A stretch of 60,994 bases of DNA, filler included, from Bipalium vagum (GCA_037834085.1; 3 parts of 3 records of this genome joined end to end with filler, not necessarily neighbours in it), one strand, 5' to 3'. Counted from the whole stretch's first letter, positions 39,975 to 57,900 are shown. Made by a program: numbers and translations. Notes: generated by a model not told the origin, from the letters alone.

Positions 39975-42900
39975 TTAGATCACTCTTGGAATTTCAATAG
40001 TCATTTCAGGTGGCAGAGACCTGGCATTACAATGAAAAATTCGGCGACCTCTTACATTACACGAGTCTATCACCTTAATAACATTCTGAAAATCCGTTTT
40101 CGAAGTTTTCAGCAAACCATTTTGTGCATTAAAAATATTTCTATCTACGGCTTCCTTTAAACTGACCCAAGTATTTCCATCCGGGTCATAGATTTCGTCA
40201 ATTTTATAGACAATCTTTTTATAATTTTCCTCAATCGAAAAAGGCCTGCAAGACTGTCTGTAATCATAATTCATAATCACCAAACCTCTTCCTATAGCAG
40301 ATTGAAAATTGCATTTCATTCCGGAATCCGTATCCAAAATTTCTAGGAATGTCTTATCACATAAACCATTGTCTACAGCTTGTTCAGGGGTTAAAAGCAT
40401 TTGCCTCTTAGTATCATACACATTATTAATTTTGTCAACATGTGGTACGCTAAGAACCAAATAGCAGCATTGAATGTGATCTAATGATTAATAAAATAAA
40501 AACGTGTATCGTGATAAAATTTATTAAAATCAAAAATCTTATTTTCATATCCTGATAGAAGAATGAAACATTAGAAAACTTTTAGAATAATACTTTCCAT
40601 TAAAATCATAAATACCATTTTCATTAACTATTATATGTCTGGTCGTTCAAAGATAAAACAAAAAATAATTAAAATTACTCCCTAACGGAAGCTTTAGTCT
40701 TCCCTCATTTTCCAGCCTCACAATTTAAGCCAATCTCAATGAAAACGTCGGATAGATATTTGCTCTTCTTTGTTCGTTCGCAACCAAAATGAGTACATAC
40801 CTGACAGAATAATTACGGAAGTCGAGAAGTGGGTCTTTTATGATAATTCCAGACGTTCGCCTTCATGGGTACAACCTGGTGAAACTTCTAGCCAGTCTCA
40901 TAAATCTTATATCAATCGAAAGGTTATGCTCAGTGCTTGGTATTCATCAAGTCAAACAATTTATGCCAACAAATAGATAGAGTTCATTCATCTTGCTTGA
41001 AAAACAATCAGATTTAATCAATTGATATGGTGTGATTGTTTTGCAGATTCTATTGAAACATGCAAATCCATGTTGCCCGATTGACTCAAAATAAATTTTC
41101 ATATTTTAATTGGGAAACTTTTTCCTCATCCACCACATAGCCCAGAAATTTCATCCTTGGATTACTATCTTTTTATCAATTTAATTTTCCTTTTCTATCC
41201 AAATTACCAAGAACGTCCTCAAGTCATTGATGCAATGAATGCCTTCTTTGAATCAAAGAAGAACTCAGATTTATTTCGAGACGGAAATTAATTTTTAATT
41301 TTGATGGTTCATATTTGTGTACATTAATAATTTTTTTCTATGCTACATTGTTTTAAAACCTATTGACAAAAAGGGTAAAGACTTTTTAAAAAGCCTAATA
41401 AAATTATTCCACCAAGGTAAAAATGCACTTATTCTCTACATTAATAAATAAATGATTAAGTTTTATTCTTTCAAGACGACACCAGACTATATGTATGAAG
41501 AGTAACAATAAAAATCTGGATAGGTTTCAATGAGAAATATCTATTATAATCATCTGACATCATTTATAACAAAGTTTTCAATGCCAGAATTTTAAGAGTA
41601 TTACAATATCATTAGAGTATTATTTTCATGACAAAAATTATTTTAATTTTTTAAAAATTAATTAAAAATGAAATCAAGAAAATATTTGTTTAATTAATAA
41701 AATCTAAAGAATACAAAATACTTAAGTAATGATAATAATTCTAAATAGAAGTTTGATGAAGATGCTCCTTCTGGAGCCTCAATAAATCATGGAGATGAAA
41801 ATTTCATCTTAGGAAAGTTTAAGGAACTGCAAACAAAATTTACTTTAGTTACTTTCGGTTACCAACTTATCAACCGTTTTTGATAAATCCTGGATTGGAG
41901 ATAATGTAACATTGAGGGATTGACGAAAATCAAACAAGAAGAATTAAGGAAGATTTAAAACAATCCAAAAACTTAAGATGCTGCAGAGTATACGTGGATT
42001 TTCTAATTGGTAATTTTGTAATACAGGGTGCTTATTGTGTATGTTAACATACTTTAATTTTAAATATTTTAATAAACAATAAAGATATAAAGTAGGTAAT
42101 ACTTTTTTATTTGAATAACATGTATATTTAAAAACAAATACAATATGTAATTATATAATTTGACGCCCGTTGATAGCTAGGCAATGGCTTAATCGAGACA
42201 GTACATTTAGACATGCTCGCTGGCACATTCCAGTATCTACTTCATTACAATCATGACTAATTTTATCCCTGAGCTCAGCGTTTGTATGATGTCTGTCTCT
42301 GTAGACATTTTGTAGAAACCTTTTGTCTAGCCAGTTCCTGACTTTTTGGTAATAGTGCGCAGGTGCCCCATCTTGTTGTAAGTACTTACAACCTCTTGTT
42401 ATTCTAGGCCATAAAATCTTTTCCAGCATCTCAAGGTATGACTCACCAGTTACCGTATCTTCGAAGAAGAATGGCCCAATGATACCTCGTGAACTTAAAC
42501 CACACCACACCGTTATCCCAACTCTGGAGTTTCTAACAGGAATTGTTATTTTAGGATTAGAGTAGGCCCAAAAGCAGCAATTGTTGCGGTTAACAACTCC
42601 ATTGAGCATGAAATTACTCTCGTCTGACCATATTATCTTGTTGACCAAGGAAGAGTCATTTTGGAATTGTACCAACATTGTCTGACAAAATTCCATTCTT
42701 CTGTCAAAGTCGTTATCACTGATCTCAATTACGGTTGACGGCTTAAATGAATGAAAGCCAGCTTCATTAATTGCCTTGTAATAACTGGTTACAGTCATGT
42801 CAAGTTCCCTAGCACCCTGCCGAACTGCTAGATTCTTCAAACATTTTTTTCACTCTTTGAATTGTTTTCGTTGTTAATACGGAACGATGTCAGTCGGATT

Positions 42901-45900: not shown

Positions 45901-48900
45901 CCATATATGATTAATATTTAACAATTGTTTTACTGGATATAAAAATTATTTAATCATTGAAAAATACATAATCTAGAACTTTTCTAAATACTTTTAATAT
46001 TTTATTCATTATATTTAATATCATTGAAATTTAATAAAATTTTGGAACTGGAATATTTTATTTACTTTTTATGTGTTTCGCTGCAGGTACATTAAGTAAT
46101 ATCCAAATAATAAATTATTAAATAATAATAATAATTATAATAAATTAGGCATTTTCAATACATCTGCTTCATCCAGCTGTACTCTAAAGATCTGTATCAC
46201 TAGCAATTTTTTTCAAATTATTTTTTCCATTGTAAATAGTAAATTATTATTATTTTTAATAATCAAACAATTACTTTATATTTATTTATTAAGATGTTTA
46301 TAGCTCTTTTCTGATAAATAAACGTTTCAGATCTTGTTAAAGAAGAATTTGAAATTGTGTCTTCATTTTTTGCTAGAACAAATGGCAGAACATCAATGAA
46401 GATGGTATCTGTAAGAACAAAAATATATTTAGAACTTTGTGGAAAGCTGAATTATTAATTCTAAAATCAAAGGTAAAATACACTGAACAAAATTTAACCT
46501 AATTAATTTCAGTTATGATCACTTTAAAAAGTTATCTTTGCTGGGCATACCTAGGAGCACAAATCAAATGGTTAATTATAAGGGTTGCAAAAAGAGTCCG
46601 AGAACCCATAAAATAGTAATAAATATAATAAATAATAATATAATAAAATTATTTACAATAATAAGATTAATATTAATAAATTACCAATAACTATAAGTAT
46701 ATAAATAATAGAATGTTATGGTTATTAATATTATATTTTGACTTTTATTATTATTATTATTATTAAACTCAACAGTATAATAATAAAATTAATATTAATA
46801 AAATATAAAAATAATTTAATTTTTATAAAACAAAATAATATTTCGAGATCAAATATTTTATAAAGAAATTGATAATTATTTCTGTATCTCTATGCAACTT
46901 GTCACGTTCGACATCCGCATCTGAACTGTGATTGAGAGCTCAGTTAATTTTCTTCATAATTACAATAGTAAATATCAAAAGAGATTGATGGCTGTCTACT
47001 TCTCCGCCGGGTAAGCGGTCTTAAGAATTTGTTTATTGAAAACGAAGTAACGTTTTTCTATCATGGACGAACCAAGATACTTTGAATTCTTGATGGACAA
47101 CTCAATAATTTTGAGCTACAAAAATAAACAATTGTTTTTAAAAACGAGATTTTCTTTCTTTCATTATTATGAAACCTTCATTTTCTGATTGTATTTCATT
47201 CTCTTTCGTTTCACTTGAGAAAATTCAACCTAGACAGTTTTCAAGTCACATTTTAGAGATACATTTTGATTTTTCAGTGAGTTCCTATTATCAATATGAT
47301 TCCTTGACAATATAAGGTGGTATTTACTTATTTTATACTTAAGTGAAAAGCTCTTATCGAAAACTAGCATAAAATAAATAAACAAGACAACCACCTACGT
47401 TAACTTTACAAAGTCTTTTGAGATGTTTATCACCTATTCTATCTTTGATTTTTGACTTGATGCATTCGTTTTAACTCATTGCATCGTCCTTCTAAACAGT
47501 TTTGTACAGATGTTCTTGCTAAATGGTGGGAATTTGTGGGAACACTTCTTCCTCTTTAGTATAAAATTTGTACCTAAAAGTAGATACTTCCGAATCCAAA
47601 TTTAATACCACAGTGGAGATGTCTATTTGACTAGGATAGATAGACACACGGTTCGTTGTGTATAGTTGATTTTGGTATATTACAGTTTTGAAACTGTCAA
47701 AATGCCTCACGAATAAACGGTTTTGAGATAACAAGAAATATGGATGGAAATGGAAGAAACGCGCTAAAATGATCCAGGAATTAAAAAAAACAAATATAAT
47801 TTTCTTTTCTTTTCATTGGTCAGATGAAATTCTTGGATCATTGATCATCCCCATTCCTTTCTATTTACTTATAACTTATCAACATAATCATAAAAAATAA
47901 AAATCAGGTAACGAGCTAAGTTTTTTCGTTTTTTAATTAAAAACTAAACCAAGACTGAAGTTAAATTAAATTTATTAATCATAAAACATTATTAAAAAAT
48001 TAATCATCCAGATATTCCCCATCTTTTTCTATTACTGCCTCCCATCTACTTAGAAGTTTATTGATCCCAGTATTATATATTAAGTTCCTAAAGATGAGTT
48101 GGGTCAAAAATATTGATTTTAGCCTTTTAGGCAACTTAACAAGGTATACTGTTATCAGAAGGATTTAAGGAGTGTATTTTCGTAACTATGTTTGAAAGTA
48201 GGGTTGAAAAATATGTATTTGCACATTGTAAATCGATCGTCAATATTAATAACATAAAATTCAATTACTACAAAGAAAATCAATTAAAAGTTTTCAAAAA
48301 AATTAAGACATTTTTAAATATGTTTATTTATAATATAATTCACTGATTAGTAAAGACCGGATTCTACGTGCTGCACATAACAGACTGGGTAGTAAAATCC
48401 TCTAAAATGTTTAAAGTTGAAAGATAATCTTTTCACAGTTACTGCAGTGGAAACCCCTGGAACAGTTTACTAGCCTAACCGCTATTTAAACTGTGAGCAA
48501 AAATAGAAGTAGAAAATTCAAAGAAAAAGAAATATATAACCCTAGTATCAACTAACTAGTGATTATTTGAATTGTTAATAAATTTGAGGATCCTTGTGCG
48601 TAATAATTACTTTTGTCTTATAATGTCAAATTAACTAAAATTTCAAACACCAAATTATTAAATCATTAAATCAGAATCAGATTTAATTTTCTAGTCTTTT
48701 AAAAATCTCTACATTTCTCCCCCTTTCGGAAGACTTTTTTTCACAAAGGATGATATATGGTAAAAGAGGATTTTGTCTTTGGACGTACATCCAAGGAATG
48801 CAACGATATCCACAGAAAATCAGTAGGGAGAGATTACAGTAGTGGGCAGATTTGTCTGGATTGTGATTTGAATTTCTTTCCTTATAGGTAGTCCATTGAA

Positions 48901-51900
48901 AATCTTGAGGATAGCGTTCATGTCCATTGGGTACAATGAGTTTTCAAGGACCTCAACTTAAGAACAAAACTTCCCATTTTTATAGTTACCTGTTTGGGTT
49001 TGTATAGAGGATACATTTGCAAAATCAGTTTGAGTTGCATTGGGAACGAAAAGATTTTTGGCCTTTTGGATATGAGTACCTCAGCGCGGATGTTTTCTTT
49101 TCGACTTTTGCGACGTTGGTTGCATTTTTCACTCTCATTTTGAGAAGGATAAAAAGAGGAGCTGCAGATGTGGATGGTGCCTCAAAATAAAAATGATCTC
49201 CTTCGTCATGGGCAGAATACATTCTTCAGTAATCGGCCTGGTCCATCACAGAGGATAATGCAACAAACTTTGAATCGAAATGGGACTTCGGAGGAGATGG
49301 TATACTAGGTGTATGTGACATTTTTTGAGATAAATCAGTCATTTTGAACTGTGGAGGTTGTTTGTCCATCAATCTACTTTGGATTTTCATGATAATCTGA
49401 TAACAATTTTGTGTCACAACCACTGCCATTTGTAAATCGTTGATAGGATAATGGAGGAGAAGAAGGTGATTTATTCAATATGGCTTCATTACTATTGTAA
49501 AGAAGCATTTCTTCACAGATTAATTATAATTCAGTAAACATTGATCCTTCAACCTTGAACCATATTTCGAGAAGTATGTACGTTTGTTGTACACATTGCG
49601 CCTGAAGCCATTCTGGACCAAATTTAGGTATTGAACAAATTTCAGGAACTTTGAGTTTATTCGCTAAAGGATGGAGGTTTAAAACCCCACTGGGAAGTAA
49701 TTTTAATGCTTACCGTAACTGTGGTAGATACTGAAAATCAATTTATCTCCTGATATTGTAGGAATACCACACATATTATGAAAATAATCAACTTGATTCA
49801 CAATTGTGTTCTTATCTTTGATACTTTCTTTTATTCGATCTAGGACCGCAGGCTAGTCCATGCCGTTAGTGAGGGCTTTGTCTACGAATGAAGATAACCA
49901 CCATAACAGCTTTAAGTACTTGCTCCGTTGCAAGGCATTTTATACTTTGGAATATGATAGGAATTTCGTGAACGATAGATTTCGTCATTCTCATGAATTA
50001 ATACGGAGAGAGAAGCATAATAGTGTTGGAGTTGGTTGTTTTTAAACAAAGCGTCTAGCTATGTCTGACCAAATTCTAGAAATGAATGGAGAACCATTTT
50101 TCAATCGTAATTTGGTCTGGGACACCACCAACACGAAATATCACAGAGTGATTGCAGACATGAACGTACGACCACATTTTGAGTTAGGGGATAACATCAG
50201 ATAATATATAAGTGTTTAGGTTTAAGACTTTTTGTATATAAAGTGTTCTTTCTTCAGTAGATTGGAATTTACAAGAATTTTGAATTTCCGTTGTCTTCAC
50301 AATGACTGTGGGTAAATGTATTAAGGCTTGTCTAGCCTTGTGGAATTTTTATCACTCCAAGTATGTGAATTTATTGAATTGTTGCACGCAAATTAACGCA
50401 TCGGGACCTGTTTCTGCAATGTATTGACTGATGGCGATGGAATAGGATTTGGGAGTATTTTTGTTGGAGTGAATTGGTTTTAGGCAAGGAATTGCTGTGG
50501 AAGTTTTTCTCGTAACTTGCTGGTTTAATTCACAAGGTCTTTTAAAATTCGCGTTCCTCGACCACTTCCACTGGCAAATGGAGTGTAGGAGAAAGGTAGT
50601 GAGTGAGGTTGTGAATGTAGAATAGCTTCATTGCTATTATGAATGTGGATATCTTCCATCATTACTTTTAGGTTCTTTGCTAGGGAAAGTTCAATGTTGA
50701 ACCAAATTTCCCGTAAAAGATGGGTGTGTTGAACACACTGAACATTTTCCCATTCCGAAGCAGCTCTTGCCAAAGGAGCCAAATCTTTAATGTTAATGCG
50801 CGGAGCTAAGGAATTGAGCCGTAAGGTTCCGTTTGGTGGTAATTCTAATAATTCTCGCAGCTGAGGAATATATTGAAAATCAATATATCCAGCCATCAGA
50901 GTTGTAGGGACACCACAAATTTTTAGGAAATATTCGACCTGATTTGCAATTATTTAATTATTTGCACGGCTTCTTTAACATCTTCATACGCCTGAGGTTC
51001 GTCCGTTCCACAGTTAACAGCTGTCTGAGATGTCTGTCTGTTTAAAATTGGATTTATAACGATGGCGAGGAGAGATAATTGTACACAGAATATTTTTTCC
51101 ATGATAATTTAGGACATGTACTGCTAAAGGAACATGTTCCGAGATTAGACTACCAGGATTAAAAGTAGTTACCTCCACGAAGACAGCCTTTTTTGTAATA
51201 CTGATAAATGTTGGGAATTACATTTAGGAATAAAGTAGGGATTTCTGTCGAGTAGAAAGCGATATAAGTCGTCTTTATTATGTATTAATTGCGAAGGTGA
51301 CACATAATTTGGAGAACGAATATCCTCAATGATCAAAATGGTGTTGGGTTTCGTTGTCTCCAGCCATAGTGTTCGACTTCATCCAACCAGATTATCAAGA
51401 TGGATGGAGAAATATTTTTCGACTGTAAGAGGGGCTGGGATACCACCTACTAGTAGTATCACTGAATAGTTACAGACATGAATATGGAATGACTCTTTTG
51501 GATATATGTTGTTTTTGAATCCAGGAATAATATCCGAAAGATAAAAATATTTTGGTTGAGGGATTTGATACTTCACAGCGCAGCATGATACTTCACGCAT
51601 TCTAAATAGGGGTATTTATTGAATTGTTGCACTTTGATGGACGCGTCAGAACCGGCTTCCTGAATATATTAGCTCAGTGCTATAGTATAGGAGGATGGTT
51701 TTTTAGAGTTTGAACGGATTGGTTTGGATGATTGGATTGGCTGAATTGGTTTGTGGGTATTGAAACCGAATGTTGACTTGGATTGGTTTGTTGAATGGAA
51801 AGTTCTCCTTGACAAAAAAGATTTGTATAAACACCATTCTATAACAATATAGATGTGTGTTTGTGCAAATTAAGTTACAGTAGGTAGATTGATAATAAAT

Positions 51901-54900
51901 CTCCACTGTGAACTGTAATTGCTATAAGGTGGTCATTTCGTACATGACCGTATCATTATTAAGATAATTATAATTACCAATTTTAATATAATTATGTTTG
52001 ATCAAATATTTCAAAAAATAAACACAAAGAAAGAAAATCGATAAAAAGGAAATAAAAAAAATTATGACGATAAGAATTATGAATGATCGGTTTGAACGTG
52101 GCTCTTTTTCAATATCTTTTCTTTGTTTTTTGTGCAATTCTCTATGAGCAATAGTAGGGCAAATAGCCAATATTAATATTATTAATGCCTATGGCATGAT
52201 GTAAGCTTTTCCTAGATAGAAAGCTACTTCCGATTCCTTTGATTATTTGCCATATAAAGTAAATACCAGAGAATCCGGCTACCCACGTGCTGAAAGTAGT
52301 GAAACCACCCCATATGTAGGATATAGCGTTTTTTGCTGCATGAATGTAATGTTCGACACCGAATAGAAGATTATAGTCCACTTTGCCATCTTTTAGAGTA
52401 ATCACTTTGGTAATTATTTCCATGATTCCTCTTTCTTGAACTTGGGGAAAAAGTAATATACGTCTGGCTTGTTCGATGTCATTCATGGAATACAATCCTC
52501 CATCAACCATCGTTGGTAATTTATGAAATTCAACTGTGCTTTGTAGCTATATTGTGTCTATTGTTCTCACACGATCCCTTGGAGGTTTTCTCTCAGGAAG
52601 GGATATCCATTGTTTGCCAATTTTGTATAATGGTGAAATGGCTAAACTACACATTTTTGGTTGAGGTTGTACATCCATATCTAGTAATATTCTGATCAAA
52701 GGAGCTTCAAATCGTAATTGTTTTTGGTAGATCATTTGTACAATGAGGATGATTTGCAACTTATTTTTATGCATTGATAGGTGTATAAAGCTTAGTAATG
52801 GCGAAGATTAGTAATGGCGAAGTAAGTTCGGGATTATTTACTGCTAATAACAATCGGTTTTTTAATATTTCACTGGCTAATTTACAGTCATCCAGCACTG
52901 TTTCTTGGTAGATATCTTTGAGCTGTCTTTGCAAATCATGATAGAGATAATTGATTTTATTGTTCACGTATAAAGCAAGTTTAATATCTGAAGTATCTTT
53001 AGGACATGCTCGTACTACTCTATCTTTTGATACATTTATAGTTAGTCTCTTTGACGGATGCTGCACATTTTACCACCGATTTCTTTATGATAAGACGAAT
53101 TAGTTCATTTTTATCTGTAGTTACAAGTACTGTAGAAGTTTCACGCTCCTCACTACTTGAACTGTGTCGGGGATCTTTTTTATAATTTTCAGGGATTTTA
53201 GTATATTCGTCACGTGTTGGATTAAGTTGAGATTCTGATATTTCCTCAAAATTCGTCATTTTCAATAAGCTCAGATTACAGGGTTCTTTATTAGTCTCAT
53301 AGATTAGAGTTGCTTCAGCTGAAGTGCAAAACCTTTTTTTCAGATTACAGCTAGGACGAGACAATAACTGGCCAGTAGTCATATCGAATACTCCTTCATA
53401 TATTAATAGTTCGACTTGATAGTCTTCAATTTCCATCACTTGATCAACTTTTTCACCATTAACATATTTTTTGTAACCATCACATTTACCATTTGTGAAT
53501 AATGCTCCTCTAGTTACCACTTGTCTGGTAACAGTATTTTCTTTTACCAATATGCTCAGAACTTCATCTATCTTTATTTTGCTTTGTTGAAAGGCATTGT
53601 CACAAGTATCTACGGTAGTTTGCACTTCTCTGGGTAATAATTTTGCGGACATGATGGAAGTATGCCTATTCATACCACAATAATATTGTAAGGTAGACAC
53701 TTTTACTCTACATTCACGTATTTTGGTTCTATAAAAATCACCTTCTTGATATATATAATAAGCCGTCTTTTAGCTGTTACATTATTTGGTGTTAAGTGTT
53801 CACAATCCAGTGTGTCAACCAATGAATAAGTATTTCCAAATTTTGGATTAGCACAATCATATTCTGCTATTGTACCTGTGGGTTTAGATAACGAAAACAT
53901 GAGCATCATCATCATTTGCACCATATTGGAATTGTTATTAAAAGAAGGATGAGCCGGTGTGGAATTTAAAAATTCTCATCCACCGATCTTTTCTATGAAT
54001 GGACTGACAATTTGTTGAACGGTTTTAGTGGTCTATTTTAAGATTACTGGTGCTTGATGAGGTGAGCGCTAAATTTTTTTAATAGCCTGTTGCAAAATTA
54101 TTGCAAGCGCGGTCGTACAGGTGTCTTTATTTGCGTTTTTGCATATTGCTCATTTTCTCTAATCCTTTTAATTTTGTGAACAATGCTTTAATTTTAAAAA
54201 TGAGATTATCGAATCCCATTCCTTGATAATTGATATCTGTAACATGAATGGTGCTGTCCAAAGCCTGAATAATGGCTGCAACTTTAGTTAATAAATCGTC
54301 GGGAATTGTTTCATCCTCGAACTCATTATTTAATTCTGCTGCCAGCGTCTGGGCTTGTTTAAGCATAAGCTTTTCTTTAACGTAATTCAAGATTTCAGTT
54401 TGTTGTACATGCTTTACTGCAGGTATGTGTTGATATATGGGATCATTATGTTTAATTTTTAATGCAGGTTTCTGAGTACCAATGTCTGTACCCGAAATCT
54501 TTTCGGTTTGAATACATTTATCTGGGGTTGGTAGCGGGGTTTTGATAGCTTGAAATGATGTAGTAGTTGGAATTGGTACATAATCAGGTGTATTCAATGG
54601 TTCATCATGATCGGATAACTGTACATACATATCAACTGGCCAATATTGAGACTGAATTTGTGGTAATGGATCTTCCTCCAATAATTTTTGTATAACCTCA
54701 TTGGTTTCATCTATCTCTTACCATGCGGCTTGTATATTTTGATCTATATTAGGACAAGGATTTTCTGTTATTGCTTGCTCTGTTACCGAAGTTTCAATAG
54801 GTACTTCACAATACTCTGGTTCTTCCTGGGGTTTTATTTGAGTATCTTTCATTTGATTGGTAAGATCAATGATTTCCTTCGTAGGAAGTTCAGTGGAAAT

Positions 54901-57900
54901 ATACATTCCAGGATAATGAACCTTTATATTTGTAACCTTTTTTGGTCCACAACCACAATCTATCAAGTATTCGTCGTCATCTCTCATTTTGCCAAAGATC
55001 TCTGTGAGATAAATTGAAAATTAGTCGGGGGATGTAGCTCAGCGGCCAGAGCAGTGCGCATATGAAGGTCCCGGGTTCAAATCCCGGTATCTCCGATTAA
55101 TTTTTACTAACATGGCGACCACACCAGGACACCAATCAGCGGACGAGGTCTCGAAGGTAAAATAGTAAAGGAATGGAATGAAAATTGAAGTAAAGAGACT
55201 CGGGGCGGTTAAGGGTATGGATGTGAGCTTTAAAGGAGGGGGATGTGAGATAAATTGAAAATTAGTCGGGGGATGTAGCTCAGCGGTCAGAGCAGTGCAT
55301 GCGCATGTGACGGTCCCGAGTTCTAATTCCGGTATCTCCAATTATTATTATCTCCCAATCTTTGCCTCAGTTTTTGTACTTTATTTTTTATTGGCAATAA
55401 ATAATAATGATTTGTGCCATCAGGCATATAAGCTTTTATCTTGGAGGATGTTAGATTTTCCTTACTTTGACGAATTGATTGACCATATTTTAATAACACT
55501 TCTTCTAACTCTTTTCTGTGATGTACTGAAAAGGTTACCCAATTACGGAGTTTGTTTACTATCTTTTCCAATATCTTAACTGGTATCGGCATTTTGACAA
55601 CGGAATTTAATAAAAACTTGATTTTAACATGATCCAGATTATTTTTAACCAACTCTTGCGTGAGTTTGGTGGGAATATTTTGCATATGCTTATAGTCTTG
55701 TTCGCTTATATCTGTCACAGAGCAACACCATTTCTTCATTTATAACCTCTTCGGGTTCACAATAAATATCAATTATATTATGCCAACCTGGTAATATTAT
55801 ACCATAATCCAGGAGACTATTGTTGGGATCTAATTCTATGCCATAATATTTTAATTTCAAATTTCTATTAATCAATTCCTTAACGTTACTGATTATTTCT
55901 TGTACCATTGTAGCTGTAGTTGCTGTATTTAATACCATTACATTATCAGGGTATCTGTAATATAGGGTAAATTGCTCATTTGTCTTTGGATATAACCTGC
56001 CGAATGTTTTTAATAATTTGAATTCAATATCTTTACCTATTGGATTTTGAAGTAACAAATACTTTGCTTCTTGTAAATTATCTATGGGTACTTCTCCACT
56101 AACACATTTTTCTGCGATCTGTCGCGCTGCTCTATAATGTTGAGCTCTGTCAGAAATAACTATAATTTGATCATCTGAAGGGACTTCCTCAGGATTACTT
56201 TGATCCATTTTGGAATAATCATTTTTCAAAATTTTTTCTAACCTTTCTATATAGGCTAACCGATTTTGGGAATTAATATCTGTCTCGTCTTGGAAAGTAT
56301 TAATTTGACCTGATAGTTTAAGACAACTTCTTTGAGTATGCCCAAATTTTCCACATATATAACATTTGATCTTTCCCTCAAATTTTATTTCCTGCCGTTG
56401 GGGATAATTATAATTGATGCTTCGACAGACATCTTTAACGTGGCCTCTTTTACCACATTGTGCACATTGTAGGTTCATGGCCCTACAATCATTTGCTAAC
56501 TGATTTCTACGAGCACACTTCGTGCATTGCTTACTGAACTGATTATTATTAAACTGATTATTAAATTGATTATTATTATTATGAAATTGATTATTATTTA
56601 GACTTACAGCTCTAATTTGAAATTGATCTTTTATGACGGGACGTGAACTATTACCATCTAAGGCATTATAAGTTTTAGTGGCAAATCCATTGAATCTCAC
56701 ATTTTTACTGACATTATTAATATTATTTGGACAATTTCGGGCTTCATTTCCTACTTCATTGCACCGATAACACTGTATAGTTTGCTAATTTATTACCTGT
56801 TGTGGCGATTTGGGTCTCTGTCCCAGGGACTGCGGGTTTTTAGTTATGAAATTTAATGCCTTTACTTCTACTGTGGTTTCGGCTAATTTTGCTTTTTCTA
56901 ATAACTTATCGAATACATCATGTCCATACATTATGATAGAAGATTGTATTTCGATTTTTAAACCAGGCCACCATTGGTCTTTGAATATTGATTGTGTATT
57001 TGCGTCCCAATTGTTTTGGATGCCGAAAGCTCTCTGGGCTACGGTCCTTAATTTGTGAGTATAATCCGCTACAGTTTCATTAAACTGTTGCACTGTAATG
57101 GCAAATTGCCTTCTAAAGAGATGCCCTGTATCGCCTGTTTAACCTTTGACTAACTTTTATTTTTAACTTTTTTTACCAAATCTAAATAATCACCCCAAGC
57201 TGCGCCTTTTAAATATATGGGCAAATGGTTCATCATGATTTTTTCAGAGAATCCGTATGTTTTCATTATGATATAATAATTTGCTAAGAAATCGGGTAAC
57301 TCTGCTGGGTTCCCATTGAAAACATCAATTTTAATATAACCATTATAAATTTGACTTGGATTTTCATCATCATTTGGTTGTTTTTCTTGTGCTGCCATAT
57401 CGTTTTCTATTAAATTATCAATTATTTCTGTGATTCTTTGTCGAGTCTGCCTACGTGTAAGCTTAACCTTTTTATCTGTTTGAGGATCTATTTTACGATG
57501 CCTTGATTTATGTAGTGGTGAATCTGTCTGTGTAGCAAGATCAAGAGTTTCAATTACTTTTAATTGATCCTTGTCTTCTGTTGCTGTGACTTTAGAATTT
57601 ATCATTTTACTTTGAATAGTGCTCCGAGTGTGATCACGTCAGGCTCACCAAATGTTAAGTTCCTAAAAAGTTGCTGATTTTAAAAAGATCGAACTTGGGG
57701 TTTTAGGTCACTTAACAAAGTACTTAATATCAGAAGAGTTTACGGATGAACATTCAAGCACAATATAAAAATTACTATTACAATAAATCAAAACGAAATG
57801 AAAAAATTTTTGTAAACAAAATCTTTATTGATAAATCTCTTTCACAAACTTTAAATGACAAGTTAACAATGAGATTTTAAACTGATTGATCAGAAATATT

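Follow-up and report, generated by a model that had tools for sequence, protein, structure and literature searches.

TRIMs (terminal-repeat retrotransposons in miniature) that carry tRNA-derived sequence in their long terminal repeats (LTRs) were named Helenus by Kojima in 2024 (PMC10886601). The animal members come from six phyla, Arthropoda, Mollusca, Chordata, Brachiopoda, Nemertea and Ctenophora, where the hosts are chalcidoid and cynipid wasps, pteriomorph bivalves, fishes and the coelacanth, Lingula, two nemerteans and Mnemiopsis; beyond animals the group is present in Pucciniales, some Agaricomycetes and Selaginella (PMC10886601). The published elements range in size from 311 to 1263 bp, the use of RNA polymerase III (pol III) for their transcription has been proposed but is unproven, and all published animal families make target-site duplications (TSDs) of 4 bp, while the fungal and plant members make duplications of 5 bp (PMC10886601). 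A counterpart built on 5S ribosomal RNA (rRNA), called Ajax, is known from two nemerteans and makes 5-bp TSDs (PMC10886601). The subject of our analysis is a unit of about 350 bp that starts at position 55003 of a 60,994-nucleotide stretch of DNA from Bipalium vagum (GCA_037834085.1; three parts of three records joined end to end with filler), which we refer to as the window. The initial annotation of this window had presented the unit as a tRNA-based TRIM of a sort not described from animals and had named Ajax as a tRNA-bearing TRIM of stramenopiles. Neither claim survives comparison with the literature, since Helenus had already been published in six animal phyla and Ajax is the 5S-rRNA type found in nemerteans (PMC10886601). 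What the window contains is a genuine TRIM of the Helenus type, and it belongs to a multi-copy family.

All parts of the element are read on the plus strand. The first repeat, LTR1 (55003..55112, 110 nt, TGTGAG...CTAACA), is delimited by the sequence itself, by a repeat finder and by the contig boundaries described below. It consists of a 25-nt leader (55003..55027) that is identical in LTR1 and LTR2, a tRNA-Ala-like module (55028..55095) recognized from its match to the Rfam tRNA model (RF00005), its fold and its acceptor pairing, and a short tail that includes a TTTTT run (55101..55105). A candidate primer-binding site (PBS), TGGCGACCACACCAGGAC (55113..55130), follows LTR1 and its CA end without a spacer; it is 18 nt long, starts with TGG, ends in the complement of CCA and pairs with an RNA 3' end of the form ...GUCCUGGUGUGGUCGCCA. 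The interior (55113..55243) has a length of 131 nt and is purine-rich and non-coding, with 35% A, 34% G and 17% T, versus 36% T in the surrounding piece, and with no open reading frame (ORF) of its own. It ends in a 12-nt polypurine tract (PPT), AAAGGAGGGGGA (55232..55243), which adjoins the TG start of LTR2. The second repeat (55244..55357) can be read as truncated at 55349 or as extending in full to ..CCCA at 55357, and its tRNA-Ala-like module (55269..55340) is more decayed than that of LTR1, with mutations in the T arm and in the B box.

The two direct repeats match at 98% over the first 55 nt and at 84% over the next 50 according to the repeat finder; they are identical over their first 43 nt and differ by a 4-nt indel in the region of the would-be anticodon. 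In a global alignment to LTR1, an LTR2 that ends at 55349 has 94 matches with 8 mismatches and 12 gap columns, and one that ends at 55357 has 99 matches with 10 mismatches and 6 gap columns. The LTRs are therefore 110 and either 106 or 114 nt in length and about 91% alike. The initial annotation had described LTR2 as having lost its last ~7 bp, and the alignment does permit a truncation at 55349, but a full-length repeat ending at 55357 fits equally well. The remainder of that description, the repeat pair with its termini, the PBS, the PPT and the 131-bp interior, is borne out by the sequence, the repeat finder and the alignment, and with it the TRIM architecture: two short direct LTRs with TG..CA ends in a non-coding unit of a few hundred bp, a PBS directly 3' of the 5' LTR and a PPT directly 5' of the 3' LTR.

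Each LTR contains tRNA-derived sequence. The modules of LTR1 (44.3 bits, E 1.4e-6) and LTR2 (33.4 bits, E 0.0014) both score above the gathering score of 29 set for the Rfam tRNA family, and in both of them the acceptor stem pairs in seven of seven positions and includes G3:U70, the alanine identity pair. LTR1 has G as its discriminator base and LTR2 has A. The 19-nt head of the tRNA-like module occurs only at the two LTR sites in the whole window, where 0 occurrences would be expected by chance. In LTR1 the A box TAGCTCAGCGG (55035-55045) and the B box GGTTCAAATCC (55074-55084) agree with the A box (TRGCY..YGG) and B box (GGTTC) of Helenus. Most of the family contigs read G at 55079, which restores the canonical B box GGTTCGAATCC, and most carry letters other than those of LTR2 at 55311 and 55319. 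Thus the tRNA-Ala-like module with pol III boxes that had been noted in each LTR stands, with the qualification that the B box of LTR2 is mutated.

These modules could in principle be more than relics, and the LTRs might spread functional tRNA-Ala genes, so that the element would be a tRNA gene vehicle. The G3:U70 pair, the A73 of LTR2 and the intact acceptor, D and T arms of LTR1 are what such a vehicle would carry, and a few Helenus families may encode tRNAs (PMC10886601). Yet the anticodon arm is missing from both modules, which have 12-13 nt (12 in LTR1) where the Rfam model has 17; the fold of the LTR1 module contains the acceptor, D and T arms and an unpaired stretch at the position of the anticodon arm. 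ARAGORN at its default settings detected no tRNA anywhere in the piece, with relaxed thresholds it returned only "tRNA-???" calls with a malformed anticodon, and the fold energy of the tRNA-like module is no better than that of shuffled sequences. We regard the spread of working tRNA genes as scarcely credible. Because they have no anticodon arm, the modules are not working tRNAs, and their sequence identifies them as probable promoter-like relics derived from tRNA-Ala rather than tRNA genes.

The evidence that the element belongs to a family comes from the contigs of the only public run in which the locus was found (X1); no RNA run contained it. We aligned these contigs to positions 54650-55700 at a likeness of at least 80%, and 4716 contigs were placed on these 1051 bp. 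We have not taken the summed contig depths as copy numbers. In 225 contigs the match starts exactly at 55244, the TG of the LTR, and the sequences upstream of this point disagree with one another (agreement 0.45). Eighty-five contigs run past 55104 through ..ACTAACA into variable AT-rich flanks, and in a single contig of 2750 nt the match extends from the interior up to 55003 exactly, beyond which ~2.5 kb of other sequence follows. The interior positions show variant letters in 59-97 contigs, versus 2-30 contigs at positions in the host flanks. Contig matches that stop exactly at the boundaries of the repeats and then enter unrelated flanks mean that we are dealing with a dispersed multi-copy family, and the further copies with different flanks, whose absence the initial annotation had named as a refutation, are in this way at hand. 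The majority of the contigs differ from the studied copy at several LTR positions, 55079 among them, from which it follows that the studied copy is decayed; the ~9% divergence between its LTRs is consistent with this decay.

Some contigs depart from the layout of the studied copy. In seven of them the likeness covers the LTR, the PBS and the interior as far as 55152 (its first ~40 nt), beyond which they turn into divergent A-rich sequence; others omit 65-83 nt of the interior. Both kinds suggest subfamilies, or else a larger relative as a possible helper. Joints "going back ~241-246" were also seen, but we did not count them as tandem arrays, because their simplest explanation is that single-LTR contigs align partly to each LTR. 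When the junction of the LTR end and the PBS was searched in metagenome and viral contigs, the outcome was four chance matches in bacterial-looking metagenome contigs and none in viral ones.

The site of the element is a minus-strand ORF within a retroelement that is degraded, carries env and is itself repeated, and this circumstance provides empty sites for comparison. Three contigs that come from paralogues of the host element pass from 55003 straight to 55356/7 without the unit of ~350 bp, which is therefore an insertion. The same empty sites carry 35 extra bases at exactly the 3' junction of the TRIM. The absence of these 35 bases from the studied host copy shifts the reading frame: the two halves of the host ORF are out of frame in the studied copy and in one frame in the paralogues, a comparison made by script and limited to the frame. 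The loss may represent a target-site deletion at the time of integration or a later deletion.

There are two ways to read the 3' junction. In the first, LTR2 is truncated, a perfect ATCTC duplication flanks the element (54998..55002 by direct reading, identical to 55350..55354), and the host lacks 35 nt beside it. In the second, LTR2 is full length, the flanks are ATCTC and ATCTT (55358-55362; 4 of 5 positions match), and 38 nt of host sequence are missing in between. Both readings give a duplication of 5 bp and neither gives one of 4 bp, in this one rearranged copy. The 5-bp TSD ATCTC of the initial annotation is ambiguous: ATCTC does stand on both sides of the element, but this is one of two readings and the comparison with the empty sites shows a rearranged target. 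A single rearranged copy cannot establish the TSD length of the family.

The empty sites also bear on the view that no retrotransposon is present and that two independent copies of a tRNA-derived short interspersed nuclear element (SINE) or tRNA pseudogene, or a local duplication, happen to lie around 131 bp of other sequence. Repeats derived from tRNA are abundant in this genome, as seen from the pile-up of contigs on the tRNA-like part, and the TSD is not clean, both of which such a view would accommodate. It does not explain why the paralogous host copies are without the entire 350-bp unit as one block, why the two repeats share a 25-nt leader and a TG start, or why the first repeat's CA end is directly followed by a PBS with the CCA complement and the second's TG directly preceded by a 12-nt PPT. 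Furthermore, the interior is itself multi-copy (59-97 contigs), and there is no A-rich or simple-repeat tail. The view of independent copies is largely refuted and we consider it very improbable.

We consider it highly probable that the unit is an old, decayed copy of a Helenus or "TRIMp3"-type TRIM, a non-coding parasite of ~350 bp that exploits an autonomous LTR retrotransposon. Each LTR consists of the 25-nt leader, the tRNA-Ala-derived module and a short tail. In the mechanism we propose, the internal A and B boxes would recruit pol III, which would start at about tRNA position +1 (near 55028) in the 5' LTR, read through the weak T-run of that LTR and through the T-poor interior, and stop at the T-run of the 3' LTR. 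The resulting layout would make the leader U3, an assignment that follows from the expected pol III start, the tRNA-like module R, and the last ~8 nt U5, with the TTTTT run as candidate terminator and as the R/U5 boundary. A host tRNA, probably an Arg isoacceptor, would anneal to the PBS, and the reverse transcriptase and integrase of an autonomous LTR element would, in trans, copy and insert the element. The studied copy was inserted into the degraded env-carrying retroelement and has since gained its ~9% LTR-LTR divergence, including the B-box mutations.

The distribution of T residues is compatible with this scheme. The TTTTT at 55101-55105, located just after the module, is the only run of at least 4 T on the plus strand of the element; in most family contigs position 55105 is C, and the run is shortened to TTTT. 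From the T-run to the end of the second module there are 235 nt with no TTTT, a property shared by 11% of random 235-nt windows of the piece. The stretch is suggestive of pol III use but it is not significant.

A different role for the module has to be weighed here. The unit could be a TRIM in which the tRNA-like module is a passenger, a former tRNA-derived SINE inserted in the LTR and not a promoter, with genomic RNA made by RNA polymerase II (pol II) at the LTR or by read-through from neighbouring genes. Kojima proposes just such an origin of Helenus, by insertion of a SINE2 into the LTR of a TRIM, and the promoter function is unproven (PMC10886601). The position of the T5 run in the 5' LTR, just after the module, would stop pol III at ~75 nt in the studied copy, and the deletion of the anticodon arm fits a passenger as well. 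On the other hand, the mere 25 nt 5' of the module offer little space for a pol II promoter and an R region; no part of the family is better preserved than the A and B boxes, and most contigs have a canonical B box; the interior is without T4 runs; and the same layout recurs in independent Helenus lineages. Taking these points together, we judge the passenger role to be rather unlikely.

Several observations weigh against the reading of the unit as a pol III-driven Helenus copy and should be kept in view. The TSD is ambiguous between two equally good readings of the 3' junction in a rearranged target site, and the duplication here is of 5 bp, versus 4 bp in all published animal Helenus. The pile-up of contigs over the tRNA-like part may stem in part from genuine tRNA-Ala genes or from tRNA-derived SINEs. 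ARAGORN at default settings detected no tRNA gene in the piece to which the PBS could be matched. No autonomous element with the PBS of the TRIM was found within the piece, and the PBS-like motif of the host element differs. The statistic on the T-runs is weak (P ~0.1), and the low T content of the interior alone would explain it. Finally, pol III transcription, its start site and its terminator are inferred.

When compared with the published Helenus families, the element of ~350 bp falls inside the size range and near its small end, and its LTR of ~110 nt and interior of 131 nt stand beside the 112/97, 110/133 and 104/130 of small families (Table S1 of PMC10886601). It resembles them in its conserved A and B boxes, in the lack of a credible anticodon, in a PBS of the tRNA-3'-end type, in its PPT and TG..CA ends, and in being multi-copy. 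Within the consensus fragments that we compared, Helenus LTRs mostly have a short leader, a tRNA-like part, a T-run and a few bases to ..ACA, as the element does. The differences lie in the sequences themselves. Motif searches of the published Helenus consensus file, in which control motifs were found, returned neither the PBS core TGGCGACC, nor the tRNA head GGGGATGTAGC, nor the LTR start, nor the PPT junction of the element. The published alignments of hymenopteran, fish and mollusc families use tRNA-Lys or tRNA-Val as reference (Figure 2 legend of PMC10886601), whereas the module described here is Ala-like, and the Arg-primed wasp families carry a TCT-type PBS, TGGCATCC, from which the PBS of the element differs. 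By these motifs the element shows no sequence relatedness to a published family, and the TSD, in its one rearranged copy, is not the 4 bp of animal Helenus. Since Helenus is a structural and probably polyphyletic group, the lack of sequence relatedness does not exclude membership. The comparison proposed in the initial annotation thus leads to a kind of element that is known; because no published consensus shares its PBS or its tRNA head, the sequence comparison marks it as an apparently new family of the published Helenus kind and not as a new kind.

Two other classes of elements deserve comparison. Ajax and the plant Cassandra elements likewise have, in each LTR of a TRIM, a module from a small-RNA gene with an internal pol III promoter, but theirs is 5S with a type 1 promoter (A box, intermediate element and C box), in contrast to the tRNA-like, type 2 promoter (A and B boxes) of the present element. 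No 5S rRNA module was found: with E up to 1, Rfam returned only the two tRNA matches and a chance microRNA match for the piece. Like SINE2 elements, the proposed source of the tRNA module of Helenus (PMC10886601), our element is short and apparently high in copy number and carries a tRNA-derived head that contains A and B boxes. SINE2 elements have no LTRs, PBS or PPT and end in an A-rich tail or one related to long interspersed nuclear elements (LINEs), whereas here the order is LTR-PBS...PPT-LTR with TG..CA ends.

The identity of the primer and of the helper can be narrowed to some extent. The 3' end complementary to the PBS resembles that of vertebrate tRNA-Arg(TCG/CCG), which is the basis of the putative Arg assignment; a literature search for the PBS strings returned only primer noise. 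A PBS that begins with TGGCGACC, as in our element, is of the kind assigned to tRNA-Arg; the mdg1/412 and Mag lineages of Ty3/Gypsy are candidate helpers. In Culex, the mdg1 elements and one Mag element use an Arg primer; the TSDs are of 4 bp for elements of the mdg1 lineage with an Arg PBS and mostly of 5 bp for those of the Mag lineage (PMC3286476). The apparent 5-bp TSD of the element is closer to Mag than to the 4-bp TSD of mdg1, and for this reason a helper of the 412/mdg1 lineage, the one put forward by the initial annotation, is not favoured. As a tentative proposal, which we hold to be possible but doubtful, the family may be an independent Helenus lineage in an animal group without reported members, with a tRNA-Ala head and 5-bp duplications, and hence with a helper other than those proposed for animal Helenus, such as a Mag-like Gypsy, BEL/Pao or Copia element. 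If this is true, the compact LTR would show a general design rule in which the module equals R, and the pol III start and the T-run terminator set the U3/R and R/U5 borders.

The family adds to the known Helenus-type elements one that is very compact and apparently high in copy number, and whose tRNA head, PBS and probably TSD length are unlike those of the published animal families. A family of this description favours the view that pol III-driven miniature LTR elements arose repeatedly and independently. Its copies inflate the counts of tRNA-Ala pseudogenes and can be mis-annotated as SINEs. The minimal LTR of 110 nt, made of leader, module, T-run and an 8-nt tail, would also be a handy substrate for testing the synthesis of genomic RNA by pol III, which is unproven throughout the group.

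The retroelement that received the insertion is degraded and multi-copy and lies on the minus strand (window 52142-57660). It contains gag-like ORFs with weak CCHC knuckles (57605-55690, minus), further ORFs (55739-54127, minus) and an env-like fusion glycoprotein of the Monjiviricetes type (PF24664), which is in three out-of-frame pieces (53700-53020, 53066-52767 and 52510-52142, minus). The matches of the env fragments are metagenomic proteins. A word search found no homologues of the gag-like ORF, and neither a reverse transcriptase nor an integrase was found 3' of the env (48000-52100). The order of gag followed by env recalls the GAG-ENV-POL errantivirus-like elements of some invertebrate phyla (PMC13524379). 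Just upstream of the gag-like ORF, at ~57635-57660 on the minus strand, there is an LTR-end-like ..TTAACA followed by two bases and a PBS-like TGGTGAGCCTGACG. Because this motif differs from the PBS of the TRIM, the host element is not an evident helper.

The piece as a whole has a G+C content of 30%, and two further features were recorded in the window. When three ORFs of the window were looked up as exact sequences, no match was returned. An ORF of 161 aa (39975-40460, minus) has a borderline match to the Plectin repeat and no homologue by word search; the ESM-atlas clusters closest to it consist of small plectin-repeat proteins, most of them recorded from Rotifera, which is a weak lead. At 42151-42840, also on the minus strand, lies the remnant of a Tc1/mariner-type transposase (DDE_3, HTH_Tnp_Tc3_2). 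Its closest match is a Logan contig (SRR20852515) with 74% identity, and its named relatives are from the arthropods Pycnogonum, Tachypleus and Blattella, at 36-46% identity.

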